Positions 3,901 to 59,107 of a DNA stretch of 64,000 nt are shown here, piece after piece; the stretch's first letter is position 1; each line of letters opens with the position of its first letter. Origin of the DNA: Diadema antillarum (taxonomy: Eukaryota); contig NW_027270906.1 of assembly GCF_040938485.1 (NCBI RefSeq), positions 124,001 through 188,000 of the forward strand, read 5' to 3'. Position numbers and translations under genes: made by a program. The notes beneath the pieces were generated by a model that saw only the letters and a program-made list of their open reading frames with translations, was not told the origin of the DNA and ran no database searches.

Positions 3901-6900
3901 TGCATGAAATTCGCGATTGGCATGCATTGCTTATGCGACTGCTGCACGCAAACACCCTAGACAGCAGCGGCAGTCTCAATCCCACCCTGCGCGCCCTGCG
4001 CCTCTGCCCGCCCATCCATCAAGCCATCGCCAACAAGGGCAAGTAACCGAGCGCTGGAACTGCATTTGTGTGCAATGCAATAAGAATTTCAACATTGTGT
4101 ATAGGTGTGCTAGATCTATCGACCTGTTTTCATCAATACAATAGTAGGCCAGCCAAGATGATTTTTTTTTTCTTCTTGGGACGGCGTATTTTGCGGTTCT
4201 GTTGCAAACATACTTCTAAATCAGCGGCTGTAGCACTACTGCGGCGCACTAGCAGATTACGCTTCCTTGGCCATGGCAAATGATCATGTACATTCGTGTT
4301 TTTTTTTTTTTTTTTTTGCTTTATATATTGTATTGTTTTTAAGCAGACAGTACTGGAAACCAGCCTCGTCCTGTGTTGTTTATTTTGACTGAATCAATAA
4401 TTAAGTCGTGGTGATCAGCTATAACTATAATCCACTATAAAGTCTCTTCGTAAAACGGAAACTTATAGTTGATTGAAAGTTATAGCGGATTTTAAGTCGA
4501 TCAAAGTTATCATTGATTTCACAATTGACTTTAACTTTATCTTGATAAAACGGGGCCCTGAAGAAACATTGTATTGTGCCCAGCAAATAACAATTGATAA
4601 ATCAGACTTACAGTATAGTATACCATGGACCTACTACACATGGACATTCATCGCTCGTTAATTAATTCGTGCACCTGTTTCTGTCAAAAGCGTCACAAAA
4701 ACATTTTGAACATGCTTTCCTGCTTTGATCCAGTGTTGTCCACCGACAGCCAGCCTGGATAAAAACAAGACGGCACTTTGAGAAATCTAAAAACTCTGTG
4801 CGCAGAAGATGATAACTCTCTTAAATCAAGAAAAATGCATGTGCAGTTGTAGTGCATATTGTGAAATCATCGCTAAAGCAACTTCATTTGCGAAATGCAA
4901 GTACTTTACAAGAAAAAGCAAGTAATTAAGCAGGTTGACTTTGCTTTGTAATCTATTTTCCCCCATTTGTCGCACACTGTTTCAGATTAAACATGGGCAG
5001 TGAAAGTAGACAACATGCTTGTCTTGCCATTCAGGGATGTGACATGCATGGCCGCAAGTGGCCGCTTCAGTAATTACAAATTTTGTGACGCAAAATTTGT
5101 CCTTGTTTCAGGTTTGCTGCTCCCCATCATTGGTGTTTATTCAAAGGCAGTTGAGTCTGAAAAGGCACCTCAGCCAAATAGGACCGAAATGAGGGAAACT
5201 GGGTTCTTTTGTCAGTGATGATGCACGATTACACAATCGTCACTGTCCAAACGTCTGAATGTATTCATTAAGATGCACATAATCAGGTGGCGGTGGTGAA
5301 CATTGGATCAAAGAAAGACCTCCGTTCATGGTCCATATGTGTAGTAGGTCCATGAGTATACTATAGTTAAGTACACCCATTCTAACAGGATTTTAAATGG
5401 CAGTATTACAATTGCCTTGTGACTATTAAAGACTGTACAGTCTTCTCTTGTACATTGTAAAGTTGCTCTATATTTGTATCGATTATGCTGAGTATTCTGT
5501 GATAACCATTGCCTGGTTGCCCTTGAATCCTTGCAGCCTGGGAGGTGATGTGAGGTTCTGGGACCCAAGGTTCACGGAGTCTGTTCGAGTAGTGAATACC
5601 GCCCCCGGACTCACATCTATGGCTGTTCATCCCCATGCTGGTATCTTTGCATGGTAAGACATCTGTTTCTAGGGTAGTAAAGCCTGCTGATACCATGGGT
5701 GACAGGTCTGTGTACAATGATGTTAACGGCATATTCGGAGATGGAGTTCCCAAATGGACTTGTGCGACAAACGCTTGCAGTATGCGCCAAAAACAACCGC
5801 ACTGACAGAATGAGAAGCAAGTACAATGTACTATCTCTATCAAGAGAAAAAATATCAATATCCCACGCTAGAGGGGATATGCAAAACATCTGTGTTATGG
5901 GAGGCATTATTTTTGTGAATTGCTTGTTTTGTTAATACTGGTTGACACATGAAATTTGCGAAAATAACAACAGCAAAATATGTCATGTGTACAGTATGTG
6001 ACATTGCCTTTTATTGGGGGGAATGACTTGATTTGTGTCAAAGTTGAACAAAACTTCCACAAATTTCTTATCAAAAGAGGCTGTTGATTCATTTTGAAAT
6101 ATGGAACCAAGTGGCAAGTCAAGTGAAATTACCGTGCAAATTTGGCTGTGCCAACTAGGTCCCTGTCATTGTCTTCCAGATTTACTTGAGGTGGGGAAGG
6201 TCAAATTCAGTCCTTTTATGCAAGATGATTTGCTCTCCAATTCATTCCTGGTTGACTTAGATCCATAGGACCCCCACCCCACTACAAAGCTTCAAACTTT
6301 GCCCCCTTACACCACCCTCCCCAGTACCACAAGGCTCAGTGTGCTTTATGTACTGGAAACAATGCTAAGTATTTTAAGCCCTTGTGATTCTGCAGGGATT
6401 AAAAGGAGGAAAGTCAATCAATGCCTTCTGACTCCAAGATCAGTGTGGCTGGTCCTTACTTTGTCTCTGGTATCTAGTCTCTAATCTCTTGTCTTTAGTA
6501 TCCAGGCTTGGGTGTTGGTGAGGGATTAGGGCAATGCCTCAAGCTCAAAAAGCTGTAGGCACAGGAAAGACGAATAATTGTTTGATTCTATGGGAGGATC
6601 AGGCATGCTGTTTCTTTCAAAGCATTGTAATCTGCAGTATTTTGCGGAAATGTAATGGGTGTACATGTACCATGGAATGTCTGCAGGTGGAGACCCAAAG
6701 AATATGTTAAAACACAGTGAAACCAGCCTGGGGGTAGTTTGTAGGAATATGTAGCAGTAGTGCAGTAGGCACAGCAGTGTTGTCCACTTCACCATATTCT
6801 ATTATCCCAAACTTGGTGATGAAACAAACAATCACACTTGCTGTTACATGAGAAAATTTTGAAGATGTCTAAGCCTTATACATTGTGGCAAAGAAGTTTT

Positions 6901-19277: not shown

Positions 19278-20218
19278 ACAGTTCTTATACATGTATTCTT
19301 ATTCTAAGTAGGCATAAGCGCGCTGGTGACGGTAAAACCAAGTACATGTACACTTTGTACTAGGCTCGCCTAGTATCCTGGATAAAACAGAATTTCTGCA
19401 CTGCAGCAATGCAGTTTTGGAGATGGTGTTTTCTACGAGACCTGCAGTACTTTTGTCAAAAAAGTATAGAACACATTTACATGTACAATGTACATGTATA
19501 CTATACTGCTAAAGAGTAACAGGTAAAAAAACCTTCTGTGGCGTCATGGTGGTACGTTGACCGAAAGATCGGTCTGTATCTGTCCGTCGGGGAATGTTCC
19601 GCGGAGACTGCGTCTGGCTTCACGGATCCCCTCCGTATACGGAGGACAGCGTTAATGGCAAAATATAAAAAGAGTCCTCCGGACAGACGGATCTTTCTGT
19701 CTAGGTTGGTACGTAGCTCCATGATCGCGTCGAGGGGTTGGCATTTCTACGTCGTATTTTTTTTAATTTTTTTTTTTGGTCTATTAGATATTAAGATACT
19801 GAGAAACCATGCACTTACGAAATATCATCACAGAGCATACTAAGAGGAATTCAATGTTGTTTTTTTTTTCTTTAATGGAAATTGGTTTTGAAACGGCCGA
19901 GATACATGTATCCAAAAACGAAAGTAAAACAAAGAGAATCTAAATAAGTTGGGTCCCATCTTTTTGCTTGTTTTGAATATCTCAGCCATTTCAAAACCAA
20001 TTTCCATCATATAAACGTTGAGTTCCTATCAAAATTACATGCTCTTTCATATTTCACAAGGTTTCTCATTATCTCACCAAAGGAAATAGAGGGCTGACCT
20101 GAACCAGGTCCTAACTATACCATCCCTTCCATGTACTTCACTGTTCTATGCTACACGTCAAAGTTTAAAATCTCCAAGTTCTATGTACTTGCGCAGAAAA
20201 TTGAGAATATCTGAAATC

Positions 20219-20254
20219 TCTTTCTTGAATGTTTGGGTGGCTCTAAAAAGAGCC
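20219..20254 (-). terminator. H2B histone 3' processing signal: stem-loop plus U7-binding downstream element
   Basis: Minus strand GGCTCTTTTTAGAGCC (20254-20239), then ACCCAAACATT, then CAAGAAAGA (20227-20219). Confidence 0.96.
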
Positions 20255-20285
20255 GTTGGTGACCAAGAAATCGACAAAAGTCAAT

Positions 20286-26258: not shown

Positions 26259-26957
26259 AATGCTAGTTCAGCATTTCCTGAATTCTGATGTTGTTCAACA
26301 GTTTGGGGTTCGCACATCTCTTAATTATCTCTTTATGTATGATTTTTGCTTTAGAATATCAAATCCTGGAATTATTGAACATGGATTTAACATATTATCT
26401 GCCTTGCACTGGCATTATTTGGATTCGTGCAACTGCCCAATTTGACAAGTAAAAACACCCAAATGTAGTTAGAAACGAAATAAGTTAATCTACAAGTAAT
26501 TATGACCTTGACGAACAGGGAGATTTGAAGGGAGTAAAGAGGAGGGATCAAAGGAGTATAAGGAATTAAGGACTAGTGAATATGGAGTCATCACTAAAAT
26601 TTATTTCTTGAATATTTGCGAATGCTATACAGTTGAGCATTTTCTGAATTCTGATAATCACAAGTTTGGGGATCGCACAAATTTAGAACAATAAATTCTG
26701 GCATTTTGGGAATCACTTATAAAAGGGATTAACTCGTATCTGCTTTGCACTGCACTGGCATTATTTTGTATTCGTGCAATTGCCCAATTTGACAATAGTA
26801 AAAACACCCATATGCAATTAGAAACGAAATAAGTTAATCTACACCAAATGACCATGATGACGAACAGGGGTAGAAAGAGTATATAGAGGGAGAGATCAAA
26901 GGAGTAGGTACTAGCAAATATGGAGTAATCACTCAAATTTCTTTCTTGAATATTTGG
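26259..26957. repeat. Diverged tandem duplication of the H4 3' flank (26259-26618 and 26621-26957)
   Basis: Co-linear shared blocks: GCATTT(C/T)CTGAATTCTGAT, TGCACTGGCATTATTT, TGCCCAATTTGACAA, AGAAACGAAATAAGTTAATCTACA, GACGAACAGGG, TTTCTTGAATATTTG. Confidence 0.85.
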
Positions 26958-26974
26958 TGGCTCTAAAAAGAGCC
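26940..26974 (-). terminator. H4 histone 3' stem-loop plus downstream element
   Basis: GGCTCTTTTTAGAGCC (26974-26959), ACCAAATATT, CAAGAAAGA (26948-26940). Confidence 0.96.
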
Positions 26975-27018
26975 TTTGAAATCCAGTGTCGAGTGAGAAC
27001 TGGAGCGTTGTCAGCTTC

Positions 27019-28500
<1,482 letters not shown>

Positions 28501-28531
28501 GTCGCTAGATCTCTGATCTGACGCAACAACC

Positions 28532-28566
28532 GGCTCTTTTTAGAGCCACCAAATATACAAGAAAGA
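28532..28566 (+). terminator. H3 histone 3' stem-loop plus downstream element
   Basis: GGCTCTTTTTAGAGCC 28532-28547, ACCAAATATA, CAAGAAAGA 28558-28566. Confidence 0.96.
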
Positions 28567-31500
28567 ATTCTGAGATTCTCTTTATAGCCTCTTTATCTAT
28601 CACAGGTGCAGTTTATATGTGAAATTCCCGACTCTTGTTCAAGGTTTGAATTTACAGAACAAACAGCACATTATACCTGCCAATATAACGTACAAGTACT
28701 ACATAATGAAGATAGGTAACTGGATTCGTCCCGTAGTCCTCCCTGGATTTCATCTCCCTTTATAATCAAGCCAAGATTAATTTGGCCCATCCCTAAACCC
28801 AGGATTACCATTATATGCTGCTCTAGTGCAGGAAAAAATGATTACTAATAAGTAGACACCAATTAAATAGGTCTACTCAATGCAACCTAATCTGCAGCTT
28901 CAAAGTCAGAAGGTAAATAATGATCCTGAAGCTGTACATTTTGTTCAATGGTAGGTCCTACAATCATGGACCTGTAATAACTGGTAACATTACAGTTCGT
29001 AGCAGTATGGTAGTGGGTTACCATGGTAGCGCGCGGCGCTCTATCATCTTTGATATCTTTGATGAGACTATCCTCGTTCAGAGCTCCCTGGGATTTCCCC
29101 ATCCGCCATAATAAATGCGCGCCAGTTCCCGCCTTTAGACACACCCCTACTTTGCTACCATGGCGACCCCTCCGGTCCTCTCATCTCGTCCCCCTGTAAG
29201 ATTCTGTGTACGGAGTGATGGGGTGAGGGATACAGTACATTATGTACCCAACTACCACGTGTTGGAGAGCGCAGTTAAACTCCTAATAGTTTGCTGTGGA
29301 AAATAAGGTATAAAATTTATAGTCTTGCATTAAAGAAGGCTCATCATCACAAGTTACTAGTAGGCCTATTCTACAACGTTACACAGCCACAAGAGGGCAA
29401 GGTCACGTGGTTGTGGGACCACGATTTGACTGTCACCTGGTACATTGCTGTTGTAATCCATGAATCGGCTGGTGATATCCCATTCCCGATCCGAGGGCAG
29501 CGCAGAGTGTGCGAGCTCTCTTCACTTTCTCCACGCTCTCATCTCTACAATGTGCGTGCATGCCTTCCACCATAAGCAGATAAGGAGCTTCAAAGCTTCT
29601 GTTTCCACGTACTAGACCTCGTTGCATGGTGCGTGGTCACGGGGTAGGAGTGGTGGTAAGGAAATTTATGAAAATTGTCATTATTTTGAGCATGCTGTAC
29701 ATCGGTTGCGGTGTACATATGTCTCCTAAGTCTTGGAAGTGCCAAAGTACAATGTAGTTTGCAATCTACTGCACTGAATAACGTCAGAATGAAGAGTAAT
29801 TGTCTTGAATTTTATGAACGGGCTGAGAGTGTGCTGGTGATGGTCGATGGTGGTGGTTGCTGCTGCACTCCAGTGCACATGTTTATATAAAACTAGAGAG
29901 AGACTGATAGAATGTGAGAGAAGAGCTAACTCACAGATAGCTGCTGAGTCCATAATGCAGCCATTGCACCCCCCCCCCCCCCTTTAAAACTTTTGCAGGT
30001 GTTATTTGTTATGCATGGCCTTTTTGGGGGGATTAATGGCTGGACCCATTTTTGTTTCTCCTCTCTCCGAAAAGGCCCTACTGAGTACTGTATGTGTGGG
30101 TTAACTTGGCTTAACAGGTAAACTCGGCTTAACAGGTAAACTCGGCCCCTCGTAATGGGGTCGAGAGGGGCTGCTTCTTCCAAACAATTTAATAGGTAAA
30201 CGGTATTTTTTTTGGGGGGGGGGTGGGGGGCTGCCTCCTGTGTAAGCAGTGTACATTGGAAGGAGCAGGGAGCGTCCTCTCACCTCCCTGGAAGGAGCGA
30301 GCAAGGTCTAGCCCCAAATAAAAGTCGTACCAAAGGAGTTATTAGTAAGTCAGTCACATTGATATCATAATACCCAGTTGGGGGGCTTATAGTTGCTTGA
30401 GCATTGACATTTGATGGGTCATTCTTCGCAAAGTGTGTTTTTGGTCTTACAAATTATTGAAAGAAAAAGTCTCAGAAATGGAAATCTCTTTCATGAAGTG
30501 GGAAAATCATGATGAATGTTGACTTCATTAAATACGGGTGCAATCTTTGTGGGGTGTTTCCTCATTTAAAATAACTCAATTTTTTAGTGCTGCGCAGTAA
30601 TAAGTATATGCAAAATGTAACGTGACGGAGATGACATTTTGTAATCTAATATGGCATAAACAAATTTAAGGATGAATATTTAGTGCAACTGAAACAAAAC
30701 AAAAAATAGCAGTGGTTAAAGGAATTCCAATATGATTAACACCATGCATTTTTAATATCACTTTATTGTTATTTTGAAAGAAAGAAAATAAATCCATCAA
30801 CGTCATCTCCGTCACTTTTTGTGACGGAGATGACGGGTCCAACAATTAATGGCCTCATATCATCTTCCTAATCCATTCACCTGCGGTAAGAACCGTGTGT
30901 ACTGGTAGAGGGTATGATCTTCTCTCCCGTTATGCCACCAAAATCATAAATTGATTTGATTTGATGTGTAATCTTAAGCATGCATTTGGAGATGATGCTG
31001 AATAAAGGTAAGACCTGGCTTTTGTCACAAAAATTTCAAAAAAATTGCAACTTTCTTGATTGAAATAGGGGGAAAAGCAGGTGAGTTCTTCAACGTCAGC
31101 TGGTAACTGTTGTGTAGCACTAAAATCGATACTTGGGGTACCGGACATTTTTAGTTAATGGCGCCCTAAATGTTCGTGACGGAGATGATGCAAATTTGTG
31201 GGACACACAATTTTGAATTATTTTTTTTCATTTTTTTCTTAAATCGTTTGATATTGGTATATCTTATGCTAATTATTTAATAGTACCGGTACACTCTGAA
31301 GTGAAATAAAAAAGCATTTAAAAACATTTCAACATGCTTCCATCTTGAAATGTGACATAAGGATATGTATTTGTAGTATCACCGGGACATGGGGTTTTCA
31401 GTGGTATACGGATACAGGAAAATTGAAATAATAGGTTAGGATAAACAATTTATCCCTTTTTTGTATGTTATCTTAATAACATGAATGTAAGTCATTGTAA

Positions 31501-47200: not shown

Positions 47201-48633
47201 TTAGACACTTGGAAAGTGGATAAATCCAAGTGATATTTTTATGCCTCCGCAACGAAGTGGCCGGAGGCATTATGTTTTCGGGTCGTCCGTCCGTCCGTCC
47301 GTCCGTCCGTACGTCCGTACGTCCGTACGTCCGTACGTCCGTCCGTACGTCCGTCCGTCCCGTTTTGTTTTTGTCGATATCTCAAGAACCGTGTGGTGGT
47401 TTTACATCAAACTTGGTATGAGGATATATCCTTGGGGGATAATACTTTGTGTGGATTTTAGGGTCACAGGGTCAAAGGTCAAAGGTCACAGGTTTATTTT
47501 GTGAAAAAAATTGAAATTTCATGTTTTTCTCCATATCTCGCAAATGGTTCAAGGTATCTTCATGGAACTTAGTATATATGCTTGTACCGATGGGCAGTGA
47601 TTATCTAGGGAAGTTGGGGGTCATGGGTCAAAGGTCAGGGGGTCAAAGGTCAAGGTCAACTCCTCAAAATATCACTACTTTCCTTAAAATGCAATAGGCT
47701 GAAGGTTTTTTTTTTAAACTTGATGTATGGCATGTATTACCCAATATATATTTTTGGGGAAGTTTCTTGCCAAAAGGTCAAAGGTCAAAAGGTAAAAGGT
47801 CAAGTGAAAGTGCTAAATTGCACTTTTTCCTCCATACAATTTTGTATCTCGAAAGTAACTCAAGGTATCGTCATGAAACTTACATATTTATGCATGTTCA
47901 ACCTAACAGTGATTCTCTTTGGAACTGTGAGGTCAAAGGTCAAAGGCCAGGTTTAGATAATGCTATTTTCCCATTTGATACTGAAATTATACTTTTTCTC
48001 AATACCTTGAAAATTACTCAATGCATAAACTGATAAAAGGGTCAAAAGTCAAGTAAAAATCATCAGTTCCCCAAATACCTGCACTCTGACATTTTAATCA
48101 TTCATCCAATTGAACCTAGTTCTAGGAAAGTGAACATTCAGCACATTTGTGTCAAACCTGTCATTTTAATATTTTGCCAATTGTGTGAAACTGTCATCAC
48201 ACATTGTCAAGACATTGTACTATAGACCTATTAGGAGAACCATGCATTATGGCGGAGGCATATCAGTAGCCGTAGCGATATATCTAGTTTTTTCTTATTC
48301 GTCAAACTCTTATATTCCTGCTATTATAGTCTTATTCGCTCATTGTTAATGATTTGCAACACTTGAGTGATAATGAATTACACTTCATTGTCAACAGAAT
48401 TCACCGTCTCTTAATAGCTTCCACATAATAGTATCTGTGAGTGTTAGTATTCAATGTTGATTCTTTATGGCTAGCATTGATTGGACTTCATTATACATGT
48501 TCATGTAGACTACAATTTAAGGTGATTTTTGCACAATTTGACAGATTTCTACATGTATTTTTTTTCCCAGATCGAGTACCTTGAAGTGGCATACCTTTAT
48601 GATTGTGAAGGATATCAGGTAAGCTGGAAAGAC

Positions 48634-48682
<49 letters not shown>

Positions 48683-51600
48683 ATTGTACAGTTGCGTCTG
48701 TCAACAACACTTTGAAAATCATCTCAATCCATTCATGATATGTGTGTTTAGCTAAGCAAGCTTATTACTTACGAGATAAAAATGGAAAGTCACAGTGTAT
48801 TTGAGTGGCATTTCTGTGAGCTAAAGTTCATATGGAGCATATTGCTTGATGTTTGCAAAGACAAGGACAAAGAAAGCGTTCATTATATGATATTAATTTA
48901 TATCTTAATAGATGTTGAGAATAATTGTAGAGTGGTACATGTTCCTATCTCAGGCTCATTGCTGTATTTGTGCTGAGGGCAAGCAGATCACCCTGTGTGG
49001 CAACCTTGGTTGCTACCACTCTTACTGCACTGACTGCATGAACTTCCTTGTTGGACCACTGGAATCAAGGAGGGTAAAGAAACACACACCATGGATCAAT
49101 CTTTCCACCTTTCCTTTTCATTCCTCTCTTGATTCTCGTACCAGACTTTAGAAGTCAAAATTTTGATATTAGCATTGGTTATCAGTTTAATGTCATGCTC
49201 AAGAACAACACCTAAACAACAAAATGTCAATGATTAATACATCATGGCTTATACCAGACAACTATGGTCCCAGGGTACCTCCATGTCAGACATTTTTCCA
49301 TGTGTTTATCCTAGTTTTTTTTATAGTTTTTTTAATAGTTTTTTTATTGAATTGTCCATTTTGTTCCATGTTTTATCTTCTAGTGCTTGATAAAGAAGGC
49401 ATTATAGGGCCTACTCTACCCCTGTTGCTTAGATGGATAAGGTTATGTTATGTTTCTTCCATGTGCCTTATTGCAGTCATGAAGGTGTTTTTTTTTTTTC
49501 AACCAGAAGTGCAACACATATATTTTATTTAAAGTCAAGCACTTGTAGACCTATTATGTAAGGTTACACAAGATTTTCATTTCATTTACTCAAATTTCTT
49601 CTATCTTCCAACATCAAACACCCCCCCCCCCAAAAAAAAAAAAAAACAATAAAAGGAAATCAGGAAAGGAAATATTGATGGTTGCTAGCATATTCATGAT
49701 TAATTCCTCCCTTTTTGATTGTGATTTTTTATCAGAAAGGTCTTGATAAATCTTTACCCTCCCCCTACAAATTTCCGTAAAAGCACTTACCTCATACCAT
49801 CTTCCTTTTCTATGATCTACCCAATTCAGGTATCACAACAAGACCCCTGGTCCTGCTACCTGTGTTCATCAATAGATTGTCATGGTTACCTGAAGAGACG
49901 GGTTGACTGGCAGGAAAGACTAGTGGAGTTCTTCAACCAGGACCAGTTCATGGAGTTCCCACCCCTCCGTGTGTATAAGCCACACCTACCTGCAGAGAGA
50001 CGGCCAATCAGAGTGCTCTCGTTGTTTGATGGCATCGGCACAGGTGAGCCACCGCTGATGAAGTATGCACGAACATCAAAGGTGTCAAAGTATTGAGTGT
50101 GTGTGTGTGTGTGTGTGTATCACACCCTCTTGTGAGTTTTTGTGCATGGCTCTGTGTTTGTAAGTTATGAACCATGAAATGATGGCTCCATACAGTCAAA
50201 ACAAAGGTCCCATTTGTGATCTCCAGTACTGTCTCTTGTTGCATTTTGTTACTCAGGCTGGAATTACACACTGAGATGTAACCTTCTCCAGGTATACAGG
50301 ACTCATCTCCCTTTGTACTACTACCTCAATCCAACATTTACAGGGCAAGGTGTAGATCTTTTTTATGCCTCCACCAACGAAGTGGCCGGAGGCATTATGT
50401 TTTCGGGTCGTCCGTCCGTCCGTACGTCCGTCCCGTTTTGTTTTTGTCGATATATCAAGAACCATGTGGTGGTTTTACATCGAACTTGGTATGAGGGTAT
50501 ATCCTGGGGGGATAATACTTTGTTTGGATTTTAGGGTCACAGGGTCAAAGGTCAAAGGTCACAGGTTATTTTGTGAAAAAAAAGGTTGAAAATTCATGTT
50601 TTTCTCCATATCTTGCAAATGGTTCAAGGTATCTTCATGGAACTTAGTATATATGCTTGTTCCAATGGGCAGTGATTATCTAGGGAAGTTGGGGGTCATG
50701 GTTCAAAGGTCAGGGGGTCAAACGTCAAGGTCAACTCCTCAAAATATAACTACTTTCCTTATATTTATGCAATGCCTGAAGGTGTTTTTTTTTTTTTTTT
50801 TAACTTGATGTATGCATGTATTACCCAATATATATTTTGTGGGAAATTTCTTGCCAAAAGGTCAAAGGTCAAAAGGTCAAAGGTCAAGTGAAAGTGCTGA
50901 ATTGCACTTTTTCCTCCATATCTCAAAAGTAACTCAAGGTATCATCATGAAACTTACATATTTATGCATGTTCAACCTAACAGTGATTCTCTTTGGAACT
51001 GTGTGGTCAAAGGTCAAAGGCCAGGTTTAGATAATGCTATTTTCCCATTTGATACTGAAATTATACTTTTTCTCAATACCTTGAAAATTACTCAATGCAT
51101 AAACTTATAAAAGGGTCAAAAGTCAAGTAAAAATCATCAGTTCCCCAAATACCTGCACTCTGACATTTTAATCATTCATCCAATTGAACCTAGTTTTAGG
51201 AAAGTGAACATTCAGCACATTTGTGGCAAACCTGTCATTTTAATATTTTGCCAATTGTGTGAAACTGTCATCACACATTGTCAAGACATTGTACTATAGA
51301 CCTATTAGGAGAACCATGCATTATGGCGGAGGCATATCAGTCGCCGTAGCGATATATCTAGTTAAAACTTTCTTCCAGGAATGCTTGTGCTGAGAGACCT
51401 TGGGTTCGACGTCGACTGCTACGTGGCGTCGGAGATCAGCGATGAGGCCATTATGGTGGCCGCTGTTCGTCTGCAGGGGGAGATCAAGCAGATCGGCGAT
51501 GTCCAGAAGATCACCACGAAGGAAGTCAGTTGTTTGGTCTCGTATTTTAAATTTATTCTGCTGTTTAGAATTTGAAGCTTTCAGTGCTCATTTTGTCATT

Positions 51601-54600
51601 TTCTGGGAATGTTAAGACTGCAGAAATGATCAGAGGAAAGAATGTACTGTTTGAATCGTAATAAACGGCATTCTGTTTCTTTGGTGACAAATAAACACGT
51701 ACAGTATTCATGTTGTTGTGACTACCAGACATGGTGAGTGTATGGTCTTCTTAAAGTTGCCATAAGTTATCAATGTTAAAAATTTTAAAGTGCTAGGTAG
51801 AGGGAAGGTATAATTTACTGTTGAAAGTGTTGCCTTCTTAATTTTTAACAGTTAGCCCATTGAAATTGATATTAGCTTGTGATCTTATGGGTGAACAAAG
51901 TGCTAGGTAGAGGGAAGGTATAATTTACTGTTGAAAGTGTTGCCTTCTTAATTTTTAACAGTTAGCCCATTTAAATTGATATTAGCTTGTGATCTTATGG
52001 GTGAACAAGGAATATCCCAAAAATGCATGAAATATGCACTGCAGAGAGTGATTCTGAGAATTTGTTCATATTATACTCATAACAGCTTCATGTCACATTT
52101 TGCAGAAAGTTATTATGTTAGTTACTGAACATTACTTTATTTACAAAAATACAAGTATATTGGATGTACTTAACCACTCTCCTTTGTACATTAATTTTGA
52201 CACCAGTTTTGTGTATAGTGCAATACAATACTGAATATACCCCTGTATGTATGTTATATAGCAATTGTATGGCCAAAGAAATANNNNNNNNNNNNNNNNN
52301 NNNNNNNNNNNNNNNNNNNNNNNNNNNNNNNNNNNNNNNNNNNNNNNNNNNNNNNNNNNNNNNNNNNNNNNNNNNNNNNNNNNNNNNNNNNNNNNNNNNN
52401 NNNNNNNNNNNNNNNNNNNNNNNNNNNNNNNNNNNNNNNNNNNNNNNNNNNNNNNNNNNNNTGCTTAACATATGATGACCTTCCCCACTTCCTGTCCTAA
52501 AGCTGGCTTCCTGGGGACCTTTTGACCTCCTGATTGGAGGAAGTCCTTGCAATGACCTCTCGGTGGTCAACCCCGCCCGTAAAGGTCTGGAGGGGGGCAC
52601 GGGTCTCCTCTTCTTTGAGTTTTACCGCATCCTCAAGGCCCTGGAGCCAGGCCCAGATGACCCCCGACCTTTCTTTTGGCTCTTTGAGAATGTGGTGCAC
52701 ATGGGTCGTAAGGACAAGCAGACCATCTGTCGATTCCTGGAGGTGAGGTTGGCAGGCTTTGACCCCGCTGTCATTAGAGATACTGTTTACAGGGGGAGAA
52801 GGTGATAAGGGGGTTGGGGTTTAGGCTGATATCTGGGCTCCACATGCATAGAATGTTGCTGCATGGTAGTAAGTAAGAATGCTGTTTTTGCAATAGTTTT
52901 CAAAATGGTATCAAAATATCAAGTTTGAGATGGCTTACCTAATCAGTTCTTTTTTCTTTTTCTTTTTCTTTTCTTTTTTTTTTGTTTGTTCCAGAGCCTT
53001 CTGATGTATACAGCAGTGATAGATAAACAACATTATTATGTATACATCAACTGGTCATTATGTGCAATTACGGTTGAAAGTGACATTTTACCAAAGCCCA
53101 TGTTACAGGAATGCACAATTCTTGGTTTTTGTGAGCAAACTTTCTTTGTAACGTAGAACCTTTTGTTTCCTGTTTGAAAATAATGATTTGCCTAAGACAG
53201 TGAAAAAAAAGAGGAAAAAGTTGAAAATGGTATTAGCTTTTCGTGAGATAAATAGAAATCACATTTATGACATATTAAAGAGCATACAATTCTAAGAGGA
53301 ATTGAAAGTTTATTTGATTAAAATCGCTTTTAAAATGGCCGAGATATCCAAAAACAAAGCAAACAAAGTGGTCCTAATAGAAGGTGGGTCCCACCTTTTA
53401 TTAGGACCTCTTTGTTTTTGGATATCTCAGCCATTTGAAAACCAATTTTCATCAAGTAAAATTTGAATTACTCTTAGAATTGAATGCTCTTTGATATTTC
53501 ATAGAAGTAGTTTCTAATTATCTTGCAAAAAGTCAAAACCTGAATAATCATCTCAACCAAAACTATACCATCCCTTCAAAGGTAATTAGAAGTAATTGTT
53601 GATTTGTGTTATCCCAAATCCAACTTACTTGATAGAAGTCAATATTACTGTGAAATAGATTTTCAAAAATGACCCGTAAAAAAAAATAGTAGTGAAATGT
53701 AAAAATAATAGTAGTGAAATGTTTAAAAAAAAGTATATCAAAGTTTTTGTTCTTACCAATGTATATTGCAAAGTGCGGTGTGTAGTCATAAATGCTGTTG
53801 GTTGATTGTTGTGGAGTAGCCCAAAATAGGGCATACCAGTGTGGACTTACTTCTTTCTTGCTTTCATCTTGCCTGTAGTGTCATCCGGTGATGATTGATG
53901 CCCGCCATGTCTCCCCGTCACACAGAGCTCGCTACTACTGGGGAAATCTTCCAGGGATGCATCGGTAAAACCATCACAAATTTTATTGAGGAAGAAAGAT
54001 TTGCGGTGACACCATGTGTATGTAGTCCTTAATCGGATCGCTGTTTGGCAGAAGAGCCTAGAAAGAGGAGAAACGAAGAGGGAAGCGACATATGGGGGTT
54101 GTGAGGAGGGCAGAAAGTGAAGAGTGGGAGACAGTAATGGGCTAGAGGTTGAAGTTGCACTAGTGGAGACGGTAGAGAAAGGAACACAGAGAGTGGTAAG
54201 GAAGAATAGTGTGAGAATCAAGTAGGATGTTCGGACATCGTTAGAAGGGGAAAGATGAAATAGAAGGGAAGAGGAAGAGGAAGGAGTTGAATGTTGGAGA
54301 ATCATGGAGATAGGAGAGAGCAGTAAAGATTCATCAAACCAAGAGAAGAAAAAAAAAAGAAAAACGAAGTCGGCGAACAGTGTGACTATGGAATGCGGAA
54401 TCAATGGAGAAAGGACGAATAATCCCTCGAAGGAAGGGTAAGTAGAGGAGAGATGAGAATATGTTGATAGAAGGGAGATAGAGAGAGAGAGAGAGAGAGG
54501 CGGGGGGGGGGGGACAAAGAAAAGAAGTAGAAAAGAACAAATTGAAATTCAATACGTAAATCAGAGGGAGCTAGTATGGATCCTAGAATGAAATGCTGCT

Positions 54601-56576
54601 GAGAGGGAGAAAAAAAAATGGAAAGGAAAATTGATGACAGTTAAGTCCTGAAAAGGTTCCTGTGGGAGAAAAGCAAAAATAAGAAATCAAAATGAGGTTA
54701 AAGTGTAGACCTGAGGAGAGAAGACAAGAGAAATAACCTGTGGAGAAATGTGTAAATTAAGTAGTGGTCCTGAAAAGGACCGTTGGGTTGTATGGAAGGA
54801 AGAAATAAAACAAAAAGAAGAAAGAAGAGAAGAGAACATATACTCCGCCATCAACACACTCCGAGAACAATAGAACGCATCAACGACCGCAACACTCCAC
54901 CAACAGCCGACGCTCAGCTCGCCTGCGAGCCCGCCTCAACCGACCACTTCCTTCTAGGTCCGCATTCTCCATATATAGCCCGCCTCTTCTCAGATCACGC
55001 TTCACTTCTGACGAAGGACAGTCAACCTGCCCGAAACGTCAAGTTCCTCGGTTCTCCTAGTTATTCTTATAACTAGATTTCTTGCGCTACTTTCACTAGC
55101 ACCTTTACTCAGTGTTTCATTTCTCTTTCCTCTCTCTCTCTCTCTCTTACACTTTTGTCTGTTTCTACACTACTTATCTTTTCTTTTCTTTTCTGTTCTC
55201 TTCTCTTCTTTCTTCTTTTTGTTTTATTTCTTCCTTCCATACAACCCAACGGTCCTTTTCAGGACCACTACTTAATTTACACATTTCTCCACAGGTTATT
55301 TCTCTTGTCTTCTCTCCTCAGGTCTACACTTATACCTCATTTTGATTTCTTATTTTTGCTTTTCTCCCACAGGAACCTTTTCAGGACTTAACTGTCATCA
55401 ATTTTCCTTTCCATTTTTTTTCTCCCTCTCAGCAGCATTTCATTCTAGGATCCATACTAGCTCCCTCTGATTTACGTATTGAATTTCAATTTGTTCTTTT
55501 CTACTTCTTTTCTTTGTCCCCCCCCCCCCCCCGCCTCTCTCTCTCTCTCTCTCTATCTCCCTTCTATCAACATATTCTCATCTCTCCTCTACTTACCCTT
55601 CCTTCGAGGGATTATTCGTCCTTTCTCCATTGATTCCGCATTCCATAGTCACACTGTTCGCCGACTTCGTTTTTCTTTTTTTTTTTCTTCTCTTGGTTTG
55701 ATGAATCTTTACTAAATTTTATTGACTTGTACAGTCATCAGTTCCTCTTTCTCAAATTTAAGTACAATCTAATAACTATTTTGTTAGTGCAGGTGAATTT
55801 ATTGAATCTTGAATGAACCCATGAATTTCTTGAAGCATGGATGTGTATTGCGTGTTGGCAGCAAGAATTCACTATCAATAATAATCTTTACCCACATGCT
55901 GTTTAGCTCACCTGAGCCAAGAGCTCAAGTGAGGTATTGCGATGATCGTCTGGCTTCTGGCGTGTGTTGTGCATAAACATACAATTTCACCATAATGTCA
56001 AAATCCCATGACAAATTTTCACCGAACTACACATGTAGTATCCCTAGGGTAATAGGCTCTTAGTTTCTCCAAATGGGCACCATAAGCCCTAAAAGGATTA
56101 ACAGTAAAATAACCCAAAATAAAATAAAATTAAACAAAACAAAAGCTCCCAGCTATCAAAAAGTGATACAGCTAAGTTAGTACTATGAGAACCAAATTTG
56201 GATGTATGTACCACACAATTGTCTCCCTATTGCTCCTTGGAATCTTTGTAGGTTTAATGTGTGAATGTTGCCACTGTTGTGATTATGAATTATTTCACTT
56301 TTTATCTTTTTTTTAAGGGGGAGGGGTTAGTGTTAATGGTGTGAAGGGTTGAATGGCTGCTGTGAATCTCTAAGTGAGCCTGTATGAGATGACATGTACA
56401 ATATTGTACAGGCCTCGAAATAGGATTTTGGAGGGGCAAGGCCATTTAGAAAAGGGCACTTTTTCCAAGAGGCCAGGGCACTTAAGTCAGTCAGAGGGGC
56501 ACCAAGGCCACATTGGAAAGGGCATGTTTGGTGTTTATGAAAAAAGAAAGAAGAAAAACAAACCGAGAAAAACAAA

Positions 56577-56622
<46 letters not shown>

Positions 56623-59107
56623 GCAACACACAACAAAAACCTCTTCCCTACAGCTGTAACACATTCCCGATCTCCGCGTTTCTATCAGGTGAAACGACAT
56701 TTTTTAAAACAGGAATAAAACAACAGTAGGTATTGATTGAAACTCGACACCCTTTCAGGCCAGCCAGGCCAGGCTGCCATGAAACTTCAAAGCACATTCC
56801 GACAGCTGGCTGGCAAAACCACAAGGCAAAGGAATTTGCACACGCGTGTAGATTGCTATGATTAGTCTGTGACAGACAGTTCATGACCTCCAAGAATGCG
56901 CCAGTACGCGCGGTTTCTTCTGTTGATTGGTCTCTCTCTCTCTCTCCACCCCTCCCCATTCCCCAGTCTGGCACACCTTGGCATCGTGGGATTTTTCTTT
57001 TTTCTTGGTGAACTTGGAGTTCACTCTTTACTTCTCTATCTGAATATGCGCTGCCTAGCTAGTACATACTCGCGGCCGCTGCGCTGCGGAGGCAGTCGGG
57101 ACGGTAAAAGCCGGTCGGGCGTACATGTACGTACACGTCGTCTCGTAACTCGGGAAGATACTTTGAGTTTGAATCAGATATATCGGGACGCGAGTGAACT
57201 GAAGGTATGATATTTGAGATCAGGAAAGTTGTTCAAGCTTATTAAAGAGACTTTGAGAAAGGGCATATCATACGTCATAAATAATAACTTTCATTCTAAA
57301 AGGGCACCACGGCCCCAAGAAAAAGGGCACATTTTTTTTGGCCGTAACTTCGATCAAAAAACAAAAGGCATTGCGGCCAACGAGAGGGGCACCGACGGCC
57401 ATGGCCATCGGTGGCCATCGGTTAATTCGAGGCCTGGTTGTATATCTCTCTTCATTACAGCCCTTATGTGGCGGCCGCAGGGAATCCCCTCATCCTTCAA
57501 GAGTGCCTTGAACCTCACTGTGACAGACAGGCTCAGGTATGGTTAGTGATTGAGAGTGTCTGTCTTTACATTTCCATATGTACTACCAGGAGGAGATAAA
57601 CTGAAAGTCAAACTTACTGTTTTCTTTATGGCAATTAATGATTAGATATCTAAATATAGAAACTAGGCTTGATTCCTGGAAGATAACTTTTGATATTTTT
57701 TGTAGAGACACTGCTGTGCTTAATGTTTTCTAGTGGTTGCATGGATTACAGGATTGATCAAAATGCCTGTCAATGCAATCTTACTCTGAATTATATCAGT
57801 TAATTGTATGAAGAGAATGTGAAAATGTTTTTACAGAATATCGTCAAATTCTTTCCCGTGACAGATTGTTTTTGATGAACGTTAATGCTGTAGATTGAAT
57901 GAAAAATGCAGATAGCGTTATATGACCCTTTAACACTCATCTGTTATTCTGCTTGCCATGGATGGTAAGAGAGAATATATGTGGAATGCCCTTCCATAGA
58001 TTACAAGTGTAAAATAAATAGGTACGGGATAAACAGTTTATGCTGTGATGTTACTTTCTGTGTGAACAGTTCTCCAAGGTTGCCACCATCACGACGCGAT
58101 CTAACTCCATCCGACAGACCAAGGATGCAATCCTACCAGTCATCATGAATGGCAAGGAGGATGGACTCTGGGCCACAGAGCTTGAGAGGTACAAATTAAA
58201 GTACAGACACAATTTTTCATGTATGTCATATATGAAATTTTAAAAAAAAATTGTTATTTTTAGCTAATACAAGTAAAAGTGTGTTCCCATACCAAGATAT
58301 ATTGAAGTTAACATTTGTTCTTTTTTATTTTGGGTGGTTTTAAGACAAATTTTATGTTCATACAGCTGAAATATGAAATTTTTGACATTTCTGTCCTGAA
58401 TAAGAAATTGTGAGAGCAGAGTCAACTTGCTGATTTGAATATTTGTAAGGACTGGTCAAGAAATGCTTTTCGAAACCATGAAATATCAATATGTCATAAC
58501 TTCTTATTTCGTATCTGATTTTTGTCATATTTGTATTGTTCTGTAGGGAATATTTTTCTCTATCCTTTGAAGTTTATTTATTTTTGGGGTGGATTTCCTG
58601 TGTATGTATAAACATAGGCAGCATACATTTGTGGGGGCATAGTGGATAATATTCTTGACTCCCAATCAGAGGACCCAAGTTCGATTCTCGCCCAGTGCTT
58701 ATATGTCCTTGGACAAGATGTTTTTACCCACCATGTCCCTCTTGACCCAGGTGTATATTGAATGAGTACCTGGCAACACTAGGGTAATAATAATAGCAGG
58801 GCCCTCTGGTAGAGCATTGGCAACACTGAAGAGGCTACCTGCCCTGGGTAAATATGACCTTATGATGATGATTATCATTATTATTATCATTATTATAAAA
58901 TTATTATTCTGCATTGAATCACTATGCATGCATTTTGTCTCTGTGTGTCTTCCCAGGCTCTTTGGTTTCCCAGATCACTACACCGACATCGGTAACCTAA
59001 GTCGCACCAACCGACAGAAGCTGTTGGGAAAGGCTTGGTGTGTGCCAGTCATCAAACACCTGATGGCACCACTCAAGGACTACTTCTCCTGCAGGCATCA
59101 GGAATGA
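37277..59107 (+). CDS. DNMT3: DNA (cytosine-5)-methyltransferase 3 (de novo; PWWP-ADD-MTase), about 1339 aa from ATG 37277; possibly extended by upstream exons
   Basis: Coding exons with GT/AG boundaries and matching phases: 37277-39190, 39385-39477, 40269-40376, 41258-41410 and 43525-43632 (PWWP, GYCWWPG), 44493-44676, 45184-45318, 46181-46225, 46817-46896, 48571-48618, 48954-49073 (ADD Cys-rich), 49830-50043 (ends in motif [11 protein letters not shown]), 51379-51524, 52503-52742 (GSPCND, FENV), 53879-53964 ([13 protein letters not shown]), 57461-57536, 58070-58188 (TITTRSNS), 58957-59107 (FGFPDHYTD...[16 protein letters not shown]). Total 4020 nt with an open frame. Confidence 0.95.
39690..39842 (-). 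mobile_element. tRNA-derived SINE head (fragment)
   Basis: Minus strand TGGCTTGGTGG (A box) and GGTTCAAGCC (B box) at tRNA-like spacing. Confidence 0.55.
41925..43203 (+). mobile_element. HINE-like element of a second subfamily with internal ~160-bp tandem core repeats
   Basis: SubTIR TGTCTCGCCCA (41930-41940) / TGGGCGAGACA (43171-43181), GTCC/GTC microsatellite near 41990, two families of tandem core repeats containing AGGTCAAAGGTCA, T-rich ends. Confidence 0.72.
47236..48289 (+). mobile_element. Helentron-associated non-autonomous element (HINE; DINE-1/Tsp/pearl-like), copy 1
   Basis: T-run, subterminal IR ATGCCTCCGC with a nearby inverted partner GGCCGGAGGCAT, (GTCC/GTAC)n microsatellite, TCAAAGGTCA-rich core, 3' subTIR GGCGGAGGCATA, short 3' palindrome, ends in TT. 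Confidence 0.8.
50359..51363 (+). mobile_element. HINE/Tsp-like element, copy 2 (near-identical to 47236-48289)
   Basis: Same termini and body as copy 1 with a shorter microsatellite; ends about 15 nt before the acceptor at 51378. Confidence 0.8.
51787..52006. repeat. 110-bp direct tandem duplication (2 copies, 1 mismatch)
   Basis: 51787-51896 matches 51897-52006. Confidence 0.9.
52284..52461. other. Assembly gap (178 N)
   Basis: Run of N ending 41 nt before the acceptor of the catalytic PC-motif exon. Confidence 1.
53990..55713 (+). mobile_element. Truncated Penelope-like (or retrozyme-like) retro-insertion with inverted duplication and 12-bp target-site duplication
   Basis: AAATTTTATTGA at 53978-53989 and 55714-55725 flanks the insert. 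Inverted arms at 54322-54838 and 55194-55713. Hammerhead motif at 55004-55044. Confidence 0.75.
55004..55044 (+). ncRNA. Minimal type I hammerhead ribozyme motif (Penelope-type)
   Basis: ACTT-CTGACGA-A-GGACAG-TCAAC-CTGCCC-GAAAC-GTC-AAGT. It has the CUGANGA and GAAA core boxes, stem II with one mismatch, stem I ACTT/AAGT, a GUC cleavage triplet ending at 55040, and a loopless palindromic ACGT stem III. Confidence 0.75.
56409..57436. mobile_element. hAT-like non-autonomous element in a DNMT3 intron
   Basis: TIR CAGGCCTCGAA / TTCGAGGCCTG, repeated (A/G)GGGCAC subterminal motifs at both ends, (CA)n and a CpG-rich interior. No perfect 8-bp TSD seen. Confidence 0.6.
58631..58895 (+). mobile_element. 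tRNA-derived SINE in the last DNMT3 intron
   Basis: A-box-like TGGGGGCATAGTGG, B box GTTCGATTC (58679-58687), central TGTCCTTGGACAAG...GACCCAGGTGTA...GAGTACC domain typical of deuterostome SINEs, and an (ATG/ATT)n tail. Confidence 0.75.

Follow-up and report, generated by a model that had tools for sequence, protein, structure and literature searches.

A 64,000-nucleotide stretch of the Diadema antillarum genome (NCBI RefSeq assembly GCF_040938485.1, contig NW_027270906.1, positions 124,001 to 188,000 of the forward strand) was analysed for a hammerhead-bearing insert located in an intron of the DNA methyltransferase gene DNMT3. The whole stretch is referred to as the window, and positions are counted from its first letter. 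We consider it likely that the insert is a recent insertion of a Penelope-like element (PLE), which the second assembled locus copy lacks, which probably arose from two nicks of a single target site and which carries its hammerhead most probably as a passenger.

Insertion Site and Empty Site in DNMT3

The insert is 1724 bp long (53990–55713) and is bounded by two exact copies of the 12-mer AAATTTTATTGA, the left one at 53978–53989 and the right one at 55714–55725. It follows a DNMT3 catalytic-domain exon at 53879–53964 on the + strand, which matched the PDB chains of DNMT3A, DNMT3B and DNMT3C with an E-value of ~2e-10. The splice donor GT of this exon is located at 53965–53966; in intron numbering, the left copy of the 12-mer therefore begins at +14 and the insert itself at +26, and the donor splice-site consensus is intact despite the insert. 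These observations confirmed the insert, its perfect 12-bp duplication and its position behind the catalytic exon donor, all of which had been described in an initial annotation of the sequence.

A genome search with the left flank led to contig C951, which also belongs to this assembly and in which flanks that are 99.5–100% identical to those of the window are joined through one copy of the 12-mer. The offset between C951 and the window across the site is 1736, which equals 1724 + 12. As shown by DNA searches of the assembly, the colinearity between C951 and the window extends over 21 kb or more. This second DNMT3 locus (C951:101054–119015, compared with window 37300–59300) is 95–100% identical to the first and does not contain the insert, the identity dropping to 95% in the first large DNMT3 exon. 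Because the 12-mer is single at the empty site, the 12-bp repeat can be identified as a genuine target-site duplication, and the existence of this site demonstrates that the insertion in the DNMT3 intron is real and recent. The empty allele that the initial annotation had proposed to look for was therefore found in the form of the C951 site.

C951 is probably an uncollapsed second haplotype, which would fit a highly heterozygous marine invertebrate, and the insert is probably hemizygous. Given that C951 probably represents a haplotype that was not collapsed, other single-copy genes of this assembly may also occur twice. As the second contig lacks the insert, the insert is not a fixed regulatory feature of the gene. 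If the animal is heterozygous, the two alleles would allow a direct look at the effect of the insert on the DNMT3 transcript.

A Family of Penelope-Like Elements

A search of the 1.75-Gb assembly with the 355-nt centre of the insert (54839–55193) gave no fewer than 164 candidate copies, and the 40 copies that were scored were 96–100% identical to it. Family positions are given below in unit numbering, where position 1 corresponds to window 54839. Tandem units of the family lie 3850–3857 bp apart, and each unit of ~3.86 kb carries one open reading frame (ORF) of 1064 codons. A full-length copy matched RVT_1 directly (E 1.8e-11; 44.6 bits against a cutoff of 29.6), and the ORF displayed the motifs DKG and YVDD as well as a putative C-terminal GIY-YIG/CCHH block with YRIPCECGKVYIGETGRSLETRLKEH. 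A direct match of the C-terminal segment to the Pfam GIY-YIG model was not found; this segment aligned with an E-value of 1e-27 to residues 462–609 of a relative, P0094, whose residues 505–562 lie inside the aligned part and match PF01541 with 25.5 bits against a cutoff of 22.6. Full-length relatives with a reverse transcriptase (RT) and a putative GIY-YIG domain, for which the initial annotation had suggested a search, were thus recovered, the former domain directly and the latter through P0094.

Homologues of the family ORF numbered 940 at E ≤1e-10 among the 8000 candidates scored, and those listed carry RVT_1, DUF8422 and HTH_animal. These proteins, which are uncharacterised, occur in sea urchins, starfish, a crinoid, fish, insects and corals. 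The closest ones belong to sea urchins, starfish and one crinoid, and those with 99% identity come from Diadema antillarum and D. setosum.

The ends of the family were analysed at 30 loci. The 3′ ends fell into two classes, near unit 1204 or near unit 1240, which differ by an optional tail of 36 bp and correspond to the published optional PLE tail of 30–40 bp (PMC8557442). Head-to-head pairs with their 3′ ends pointing outward were observed at seven of these loci, including the window, and target-site duplications at other family insertions measured 12 bp in four cases and 11 bp in one. Inverted 5′-truncated copies and the optional tail are typical of PLEs (PMC8557442). The family therefore combines partial tandems that form pseudo-long terminal repeats (pseudo-LTRs), inverted 5′-truncated copies, an optional tail and a pseudo-LTR hammerhead, which are hallmarks of PLEs. 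This anatomy, together with the head-to-head loci, supported the earlier description of the insert as a truncated, inverted Penelope-like insertion. Judged by these sequence characters, the family is most likely a canonical endonuclease-bearing (EN+) PLE, and the insert, which is 97–99% identical to the autonomous element, is classed as a young and ordinary member of this abundant family.

The family was compared with canonical EN+ PLEs of the Penelope/Poseidon type, namely Penelope of Drosophila virilis and PAc of Anolis carolinensis (PMC11167929; reviewed in PMC8557442). It shares with them the pseudo-LTRs, the inverted 5′-truncated copies, the 30–40-bp tail, an AT-rich target, the hammerhead in the pseudo-LTR and 3′ termini that lie at the ORF start. 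Unlike in PAc, where the hammerhead overlaps the ORF start, the Diadema hammerhead sits within the last part of the long ORF and ends 13 nt ahead of the stop codon, and the Diadema untranslated region differs from that of canonical EN+ PLEs in being enlarged to ~1 kb and CT-rich. Inspection by eye indicated that the additional CxxC motif of the clades Neptune and Nematis is missing from the Diadema linker.

A conserved block, ACATGGTGT.ACCG.AAA, was observed directly before the ORF start and marks the region of the element 3′ terminus in echinoderms. It was located at window 53995–54025 (− strand) and at L082:6124–6142, L085:4900–4918, L084:5015–5033, L087:4526–4541 and L089:4908–4920, and the weevil element contains a shortened form. 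The block is likely the site at which reverse transcription starts.

A Minimal Hammerhead of the Pseudo-LTR Type

The hammerhead is located at 55004–55044 (unit 166–206) on the + strand, which is the sense strand of DNMT3, and the string reported in the initial annotation, with C55040 as the cleavage-site base, was recovered at exactly these positions. Helix I is formed by 55004–07 and 55041–44 (ACUU/AAGU). The core CUGACGA (55008–55014) is followed by an unpaired extra A55015, and helix II is formed by 55016–21 and 55027–32 (GGACAG/CUGCCC), with the loop UCAAC and a G55016–C55032 pair. The third pair of helix II is an A.C mismatch shared by the family. GAA at 55033–35 precedes the ACGU palindrome at 55036–39 and C17 at 55040, so that cleavage is predicted between 55040 and 55041. 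The catalytic boxes are all present, namely CUGANGA (55008–55014), GAAA (55033–55036) and a cleavable H17, C55040.

Minimal hammerhead ribozymes (min-HHRs) of PLEs are characterised by a base between positions 9 and 10.1, a G10.1–C11.1 pair, the combination of a long helix II with a short helix I, the lack of loop 3 and a palindrome at 15.2–16.2 (Cervera and de la Peña, 2014; PMC4209133). The Diadema motif shares the core boxes CUGANGA, GAAA and GUC, the 9/10.1 base and the G10.1–C11.1 pair. Its helices I and II measure 4 and 6 bp, a loop on helix III is lacking and the ACGU palindrome is present; it differs from the published form in the A.C mismatch at the third helix II pair. The hammerhead is identical or nearly so across the family copies, which indicates that this mismatch is a family trait. 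In rarer genomic variants and in relatives from other species the same pair is A–U or G–C.

A search of the genome with the core pattern gave 228 matches, compared with 13 for a reversed control, and these belonged to several families with unrelated helix sequences. In 19 distinct sequences, which had been collected with a pattern that fixes the core and the 10.1–11.1 pair, 88.4% of the cells were paired, compared with 22–42% when the partners were slid; nine of the ten helix pairs had changed on both sides, and none of 500 shuffles reached the observed score. A covariance model built from these sequences found one match in the window and at least 150 in the genome. The relatives in S. purpuratus and L. 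variegatus (64–68% protein identity) contain a compensatory C–G for U–A in helix I, and their helix II is perfect, with A–U at the position of the A.C pair of the window. The covariance model further identified hammerheads in the relatives from Patiria, Asterias, the crinoid Anneissia and the weevil Sitophilus. A single hammerhead per unit, placed within the repeated portion, was seen in the copies from Diadema, S. purpuratus, L. variegatus, Patiria, Asterias, Anneissia and Sitophilus. The earlier assignment to minimal type I hammerheads of the pseudo-LTR kind thus held feature by feature and through the covariation in helices I and II, and on this sequence basis the motif at 55004–55044 is a min-HHR of the PLE pseudo-LTR type.

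None of the Rfam hammerhead models (type I/II/III, HH9, HH10) matched the window at the gathering score or at E ≤10. They did not match the other Diadema families at E ≤10 either, nor the min-HHRs of other species at E ≤1. The missing helix III may be the reason that Rfam misses min-HHRs. Since the Rfam models missed every min-HHR tested, the lack of an Rfam match is no evidence against the motif, and the proposal that a lack of a covariance-model match would refute the hammerhead is invalid. More generally, these models are blind to this ribozyme class, and an absent match should not be used against such motifs.

Two copies with altered cores were observed among the relatives. An Asterias copy (L085:4801–4850) has CAGAAGA instead of CUGANGA, and in one L. 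variegatus copy (L086:5476–5524) a C replaces G12; both are probably dead ribozymes. Other min-HHR families of Diadema form head-to-head pairs in which the ribozymes lie 25 to ~210 bp apart on opposite strands, as at C9:3040931–3041021, C39:3757208–3757392 and C323:445429–445706 (L037, L048 and L077). Rfam reports the palindromes of these paired families as weak look-alikes of microRNA precursors.

Anatomy and Origin of the Insert

The insert is an inverted repeat, whose arms at 54322–54838 and 55194–55713 surround the unique 355-nt centre. Over ~520 nt the arms differ by two substitutions and three short indels in simple repeats, and the left arm continues outward for another 332 nt, to 53990. 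Two pieces of the element can be distinguished. The left piece (53990–54838, − strand) is a 5′-truncated copy of unit 355–1204 with the canonical short-form 3′ end against the left duplication. The right piece (54839–55713, + strand) covers unit 1 to ~880 and includes, besides the ORF end and the hammerhead, a portion of the untranslated region. Its first part (54839–55060) encodes the last 73 codons and the stop (TAG, 55058–55060) of the family ORF; this is the low-complexity C-terminus downstream of the putative GIY-YIG domain, with the hammerhead inside. The two pieces overlap by 1 nt at their internal joint, and no microhomology to the target was seen at the non-canonical 3′ end of the right piece.

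An inverted structure of this kind might also be produced by a fold-back or chimeric read, given the difficulty of assembling inverted repeats and the absence of the insert from C951. The insert is nevertheless composed of foreign element sequence and is not a duplicate of local DNA, its exact 12-bp duplication has the same length as at other family insertions, its left end is the canonical terminus of the family, and the head-to-head design recurs at six other loci. An assembly artefact is therefore extremely improbable, and the target-site duplication and the canonical terminus led to its rejection.

The insert was also considered as an animal non-LTR retrozyme. Such retrozymes resemble it in having a type I hammerhead related to those of PLE pseudo-LTRs, whereas they consist of short non-coding tandem units with one hammerhead each. 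This candidate was rejected on the single hammerhead and the inclusion of element ORF sequence.

The geometry of the insert suggests that it probably originated in a single event with two primers. Both staggered nicks of the 12-bp target would have primed reverse transcription of element RNA, which would give two 5′-truncated copies, head to head and with their 3′ ends outward; the left copy would have started at the usual short-form terminus of the family, the right one at a non-canonical site inside the element. During twin priming by LINE-1 in humans, reverse transcription is primed from the two ends of a staggered break, which results in inverted 5′-truncated segments within one target-site duplication. 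The insert resembles this outcome in having two such segments within one duplication; it differs in that the Diadema segments overlap and thus form a true inverted repeat, and in the enzyme, which would be the RT/GIY-YIG protein of the PLE. Purified PLE protein nicks and extends both strands in vitro, with a preference for AT-rich ATT sites, and starts reverse transcription internally and without homology to the target (PMC11167929). The integration geometry agrees with this nicking and extension of both strands (PMC11167929). Taken together, the C951 empty site and the insert provide a clean before-and-after pair for PLE integration, in which the 12-bp target is duplicated exactly, reverse transcription presumably started once at the canonical terminus and once internally, and the pieces share 1 nt at the joint.

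Several points weigh against this account of a recent, single-event PLE insertion. The right-hand 3′ end (at ~unit 880) fits neither of the two terminus classes of the family and is 325–360 nt short of them, which makes the insertion event atypical. An origin from two successive insertions or from a later rearrangement is less probable, given that the flanking duplication is intact; two nested insertions in particular are unlikely, as an internal duplication was not found within the insert and the head-to-head design recurs across the family. C951 could be a very recent segmental duplicate instead of the other haplotype. The hammerhead, as described above, has no match in Rfam.

Two smaller features accompany the hammerhead in the right piece. 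A TATA-like box, identified by eye, is located at 54970–54978 on the + strand, ~30 nt upstream of the hammerhead, and similar boxes lie upstream of the hammerhead in S. purpuratus (L082, ~5829–5838) and L. variegatus (L083, ~5450–5459). Their presence ~20–30 nt before the hammerhead in three sea-urchin elements hints that element transcription may start at or near the ribozyme. A 6-bp hairpin, AGUUAU-UCUU-AUAACU, occupies 55059–55074 on the + strand; it begins with the second base of the ORF stop codon, 14 nt past the hammerhead, and has the general shape of the Patiria hairpins.

Proposed Effect of the Hammerhead on DNMT3

It had been proposed in the initial annotation that the hammerhead may cleave DNMT3 pre-mRNA after C55040, alone or in trans, and that retroelement expression could in this way feed back on the methyltransferase, the output of which would then be lowered. 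The analysis left this proposal unsupported. The hammerhead does lie on the sense strand with its catalytic core intact, but it is the only min-HHR in the whole 64-kb window: the inverted arm ends at unit 355, beyond the hammerhead (unit 166–206) and thus before it is reached, so that a dimer cannot form within DNMT3 pre-mRNA. A partner would have to come from another transcript, and such transcripts may exist given that the family is young and numerous. The intermolecular helix III would nevertheless consist of only the 4-bp ACGU helix, with a predicted energy of ~ -1.7 kcal/mol. In the best predicted monomer fold (-9.8 kcal/mol; the two hammerhead helices reach -4.9), the core is base-paired to the region around the cleavage site and would thus be sequestered. 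The family-wide A.C mismatch also falls in helix II at a position where relatives pair.

Published experiments point in the same direction. Dimeric min-HHRs cleave somewhat in vitro, yet dimers and multimers are only weakly active and monomers are inactive (PMC4209133). For Xenopus retrozymes, one of nine dimers was cleaved, and ~44% of the copies are intronic (bioRxiv 10.64898/2026.07.22.740005), so an intronic location is not special. In the anole PLE, the one element studied biochemically, cleavage by the hammerhead requires the protein of the element; insertion in vitro proceeds without this hammerhead, and cleaved ends were not detected by RNA sequencing (PMC11167929). Such min-HHRs are thought to act only as dimers or with the element protein, in the processing of the element's own RNA. 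The second locus copy, moreover, lacks the insert altogether. Cleavage of DNMT3 pre-mRNA with feedback on the methyltransferase is accordingly very improbable. The hammerhead would most likely be a passenger in the pre-mRNA, with little or no cleavage, and an effect on DNMT3 would be expected to be lacking. The insertion itself carries little weight, as intronic PLE fragments with min-HHRs are common in invertebrate genomes.

A Histone-Like Stem-Loop Beside the Hammerhead

A hairpin resembling the histone 3′ untranslated region (UTR) stem-loop was identified at 55246–55289 on the + strand, in the DNMT3 sense orientation, with the stem-loop proper at 55251–55266. It scored 29.1 bits with RF00032, compared with a gathering score of 34, and lies ~200 nt after the hammerhead; the inverted left arm contains the matching hairpin at 54743–54786 on the − strand, also with 29.1 bits. 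As in RF00032, the stem is 6 bp long, starts with GG and ends with U–A, the loop is UUUC and the flanks are CCAAC and AC. Unlike RF00032 in histone genes, the hairpin is situated inside a retroelement and not after a histone ORF.

Comparable hairpins were observed in the echinoderm relatives. In Asterias the hairpin (L085:4851–4897) reached 35.6 bits, above the gathering score, and abuts the hammerhead in both inverted copies. The S. purpuratus hairpin (L082:5999–6043) scored 18.9 bits and lies ~95 nt after the hammerhead, and the one in the crinoid Anneissia (L087:4479–4534), which has a larger loop, scored 19.9 bits and lies 3 nt after it. The hairpins of L. variegatus (L083:5625–5654, ~95 nt after the hammerhead) and Patiria (L084, ~80 nt after it) gave no Rfam match at E ≤1. 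In L. variegatus the hairpin is followed 5 nt downstream by CAAGAAAGA, which we take to be the sea-urchin histone downstream element and which also follows the three real histone stem-loops of the window. No downstream element was evident after the Diadema hairpin. A histone-like hairpin was not found in the weevil and coral relatives, nor in four other Diadema hammerhead families.

Five element hairpins were aligned with the three real histone stem-loops of the window. All six stem pairs were paired in every sequence, and three of the six change on both sides. The second G–C, the fifth C–G, the top U–A and loop positions 1 and 3 were invariant across the eight hairpins. These conserved positions are presumably those read by the stem-loop binding protein (SLBP).

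One idea is that the element hairpin might recruit SLBP. Another is that it may be recognised by the element's own protein, given that the conserved 3′-terminal block follows directly downstream. It is a rather doubtful proposal that an echinoderm-wide PLE lineage placed a histone-mRNA-type stem-loop directly downstream of its min-HHR and uses it in non-polyadenylated expression or storage. If the hairpin did recruit the machinery of histone mRNA, in which eggs and early embryos are rich, the elements would be expressed or stored without polyadenylation. The insert would then add a sense hairpin, a hammerhead and a 517-bp double-stranded hairpin to the DNMT3 pre-mRNA of one locus copy only and, being present on one of the two copies, would offer a natural allele-specific test. 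We found nothing relevant in the literature that links histone stem-loops to retroelements; the occurrence of such a stem-loop beside a hammerhead in sea urchin, starfish and crinoid is therefore without a precedent that we could find, and it is testable.

The insert might also act on DNMT3 or on the element family by routes other than ribozyme cleavage. Its arms form a near-perfect inverted repeat of ~517 bp, which could yield double-stranded RNA in the pre-mRNA and silencing of the family by small RNAs, and the TATA-like box and the histone-like hairpin, both in sense orientation and in an insert only 26 nt from the splice donor, could give rise to aberrant DNMT3 transcripts, for instance through aberrant 3′ end formation. 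On the other hand, a downstream element could not be recognised at the Diadema hairpin, whose score stays under the gathering score of Rfam, and head-to-head pairs are common in the family, so the insert is not special in this respect. Such effects are improbable, and the preferred view remains that of an ordinary PLE insertion.

The DNMT3 Gene and Its Surroundings

The host gene was tested exon by exon, and DNMT3 features were detected on + strand segments between 37277 and 59107. An ADD zinc finger (PF21255; 51.1 bits) is located at 48912–49151 (+), and weak DNA_methylase fragments are located at 52563–52805 and 58817–59107 (+), the weakness of these matches being due to the shortness of the exons. 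The single exons therefore display the ADD zinc finger and the C5-methyltransferase motifs on one strand and in the order of DNMT3. An open segment at 58049–58240 (+) contains a downstream DNMT3 exon, and the last exon lies within 58817–59107. A run of N occupies 52284–52461.

Repeats were also observed within the gene. A repeat of ~200 bp at 58702–58912, directly upstream of the coding part of the last exon, has more than 3000 candidate genome copies with 88–90% identity and is probably a short interspersed element (SINE) or a miniature element. Two copies of another repeat, which translate as peptide repeats, are located in DNMT3 introns at 47230–47504 and 50313–50589.

The three true histone 3′ stem-loops of the window are located at 20214–20259 (−), 26934–26979 (−) and 28527–28571 (+), with scores of 39.7–43.9 bits. 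They indicate a histone gene cluster 9–17 kb upstream of the DNMT3 gene.

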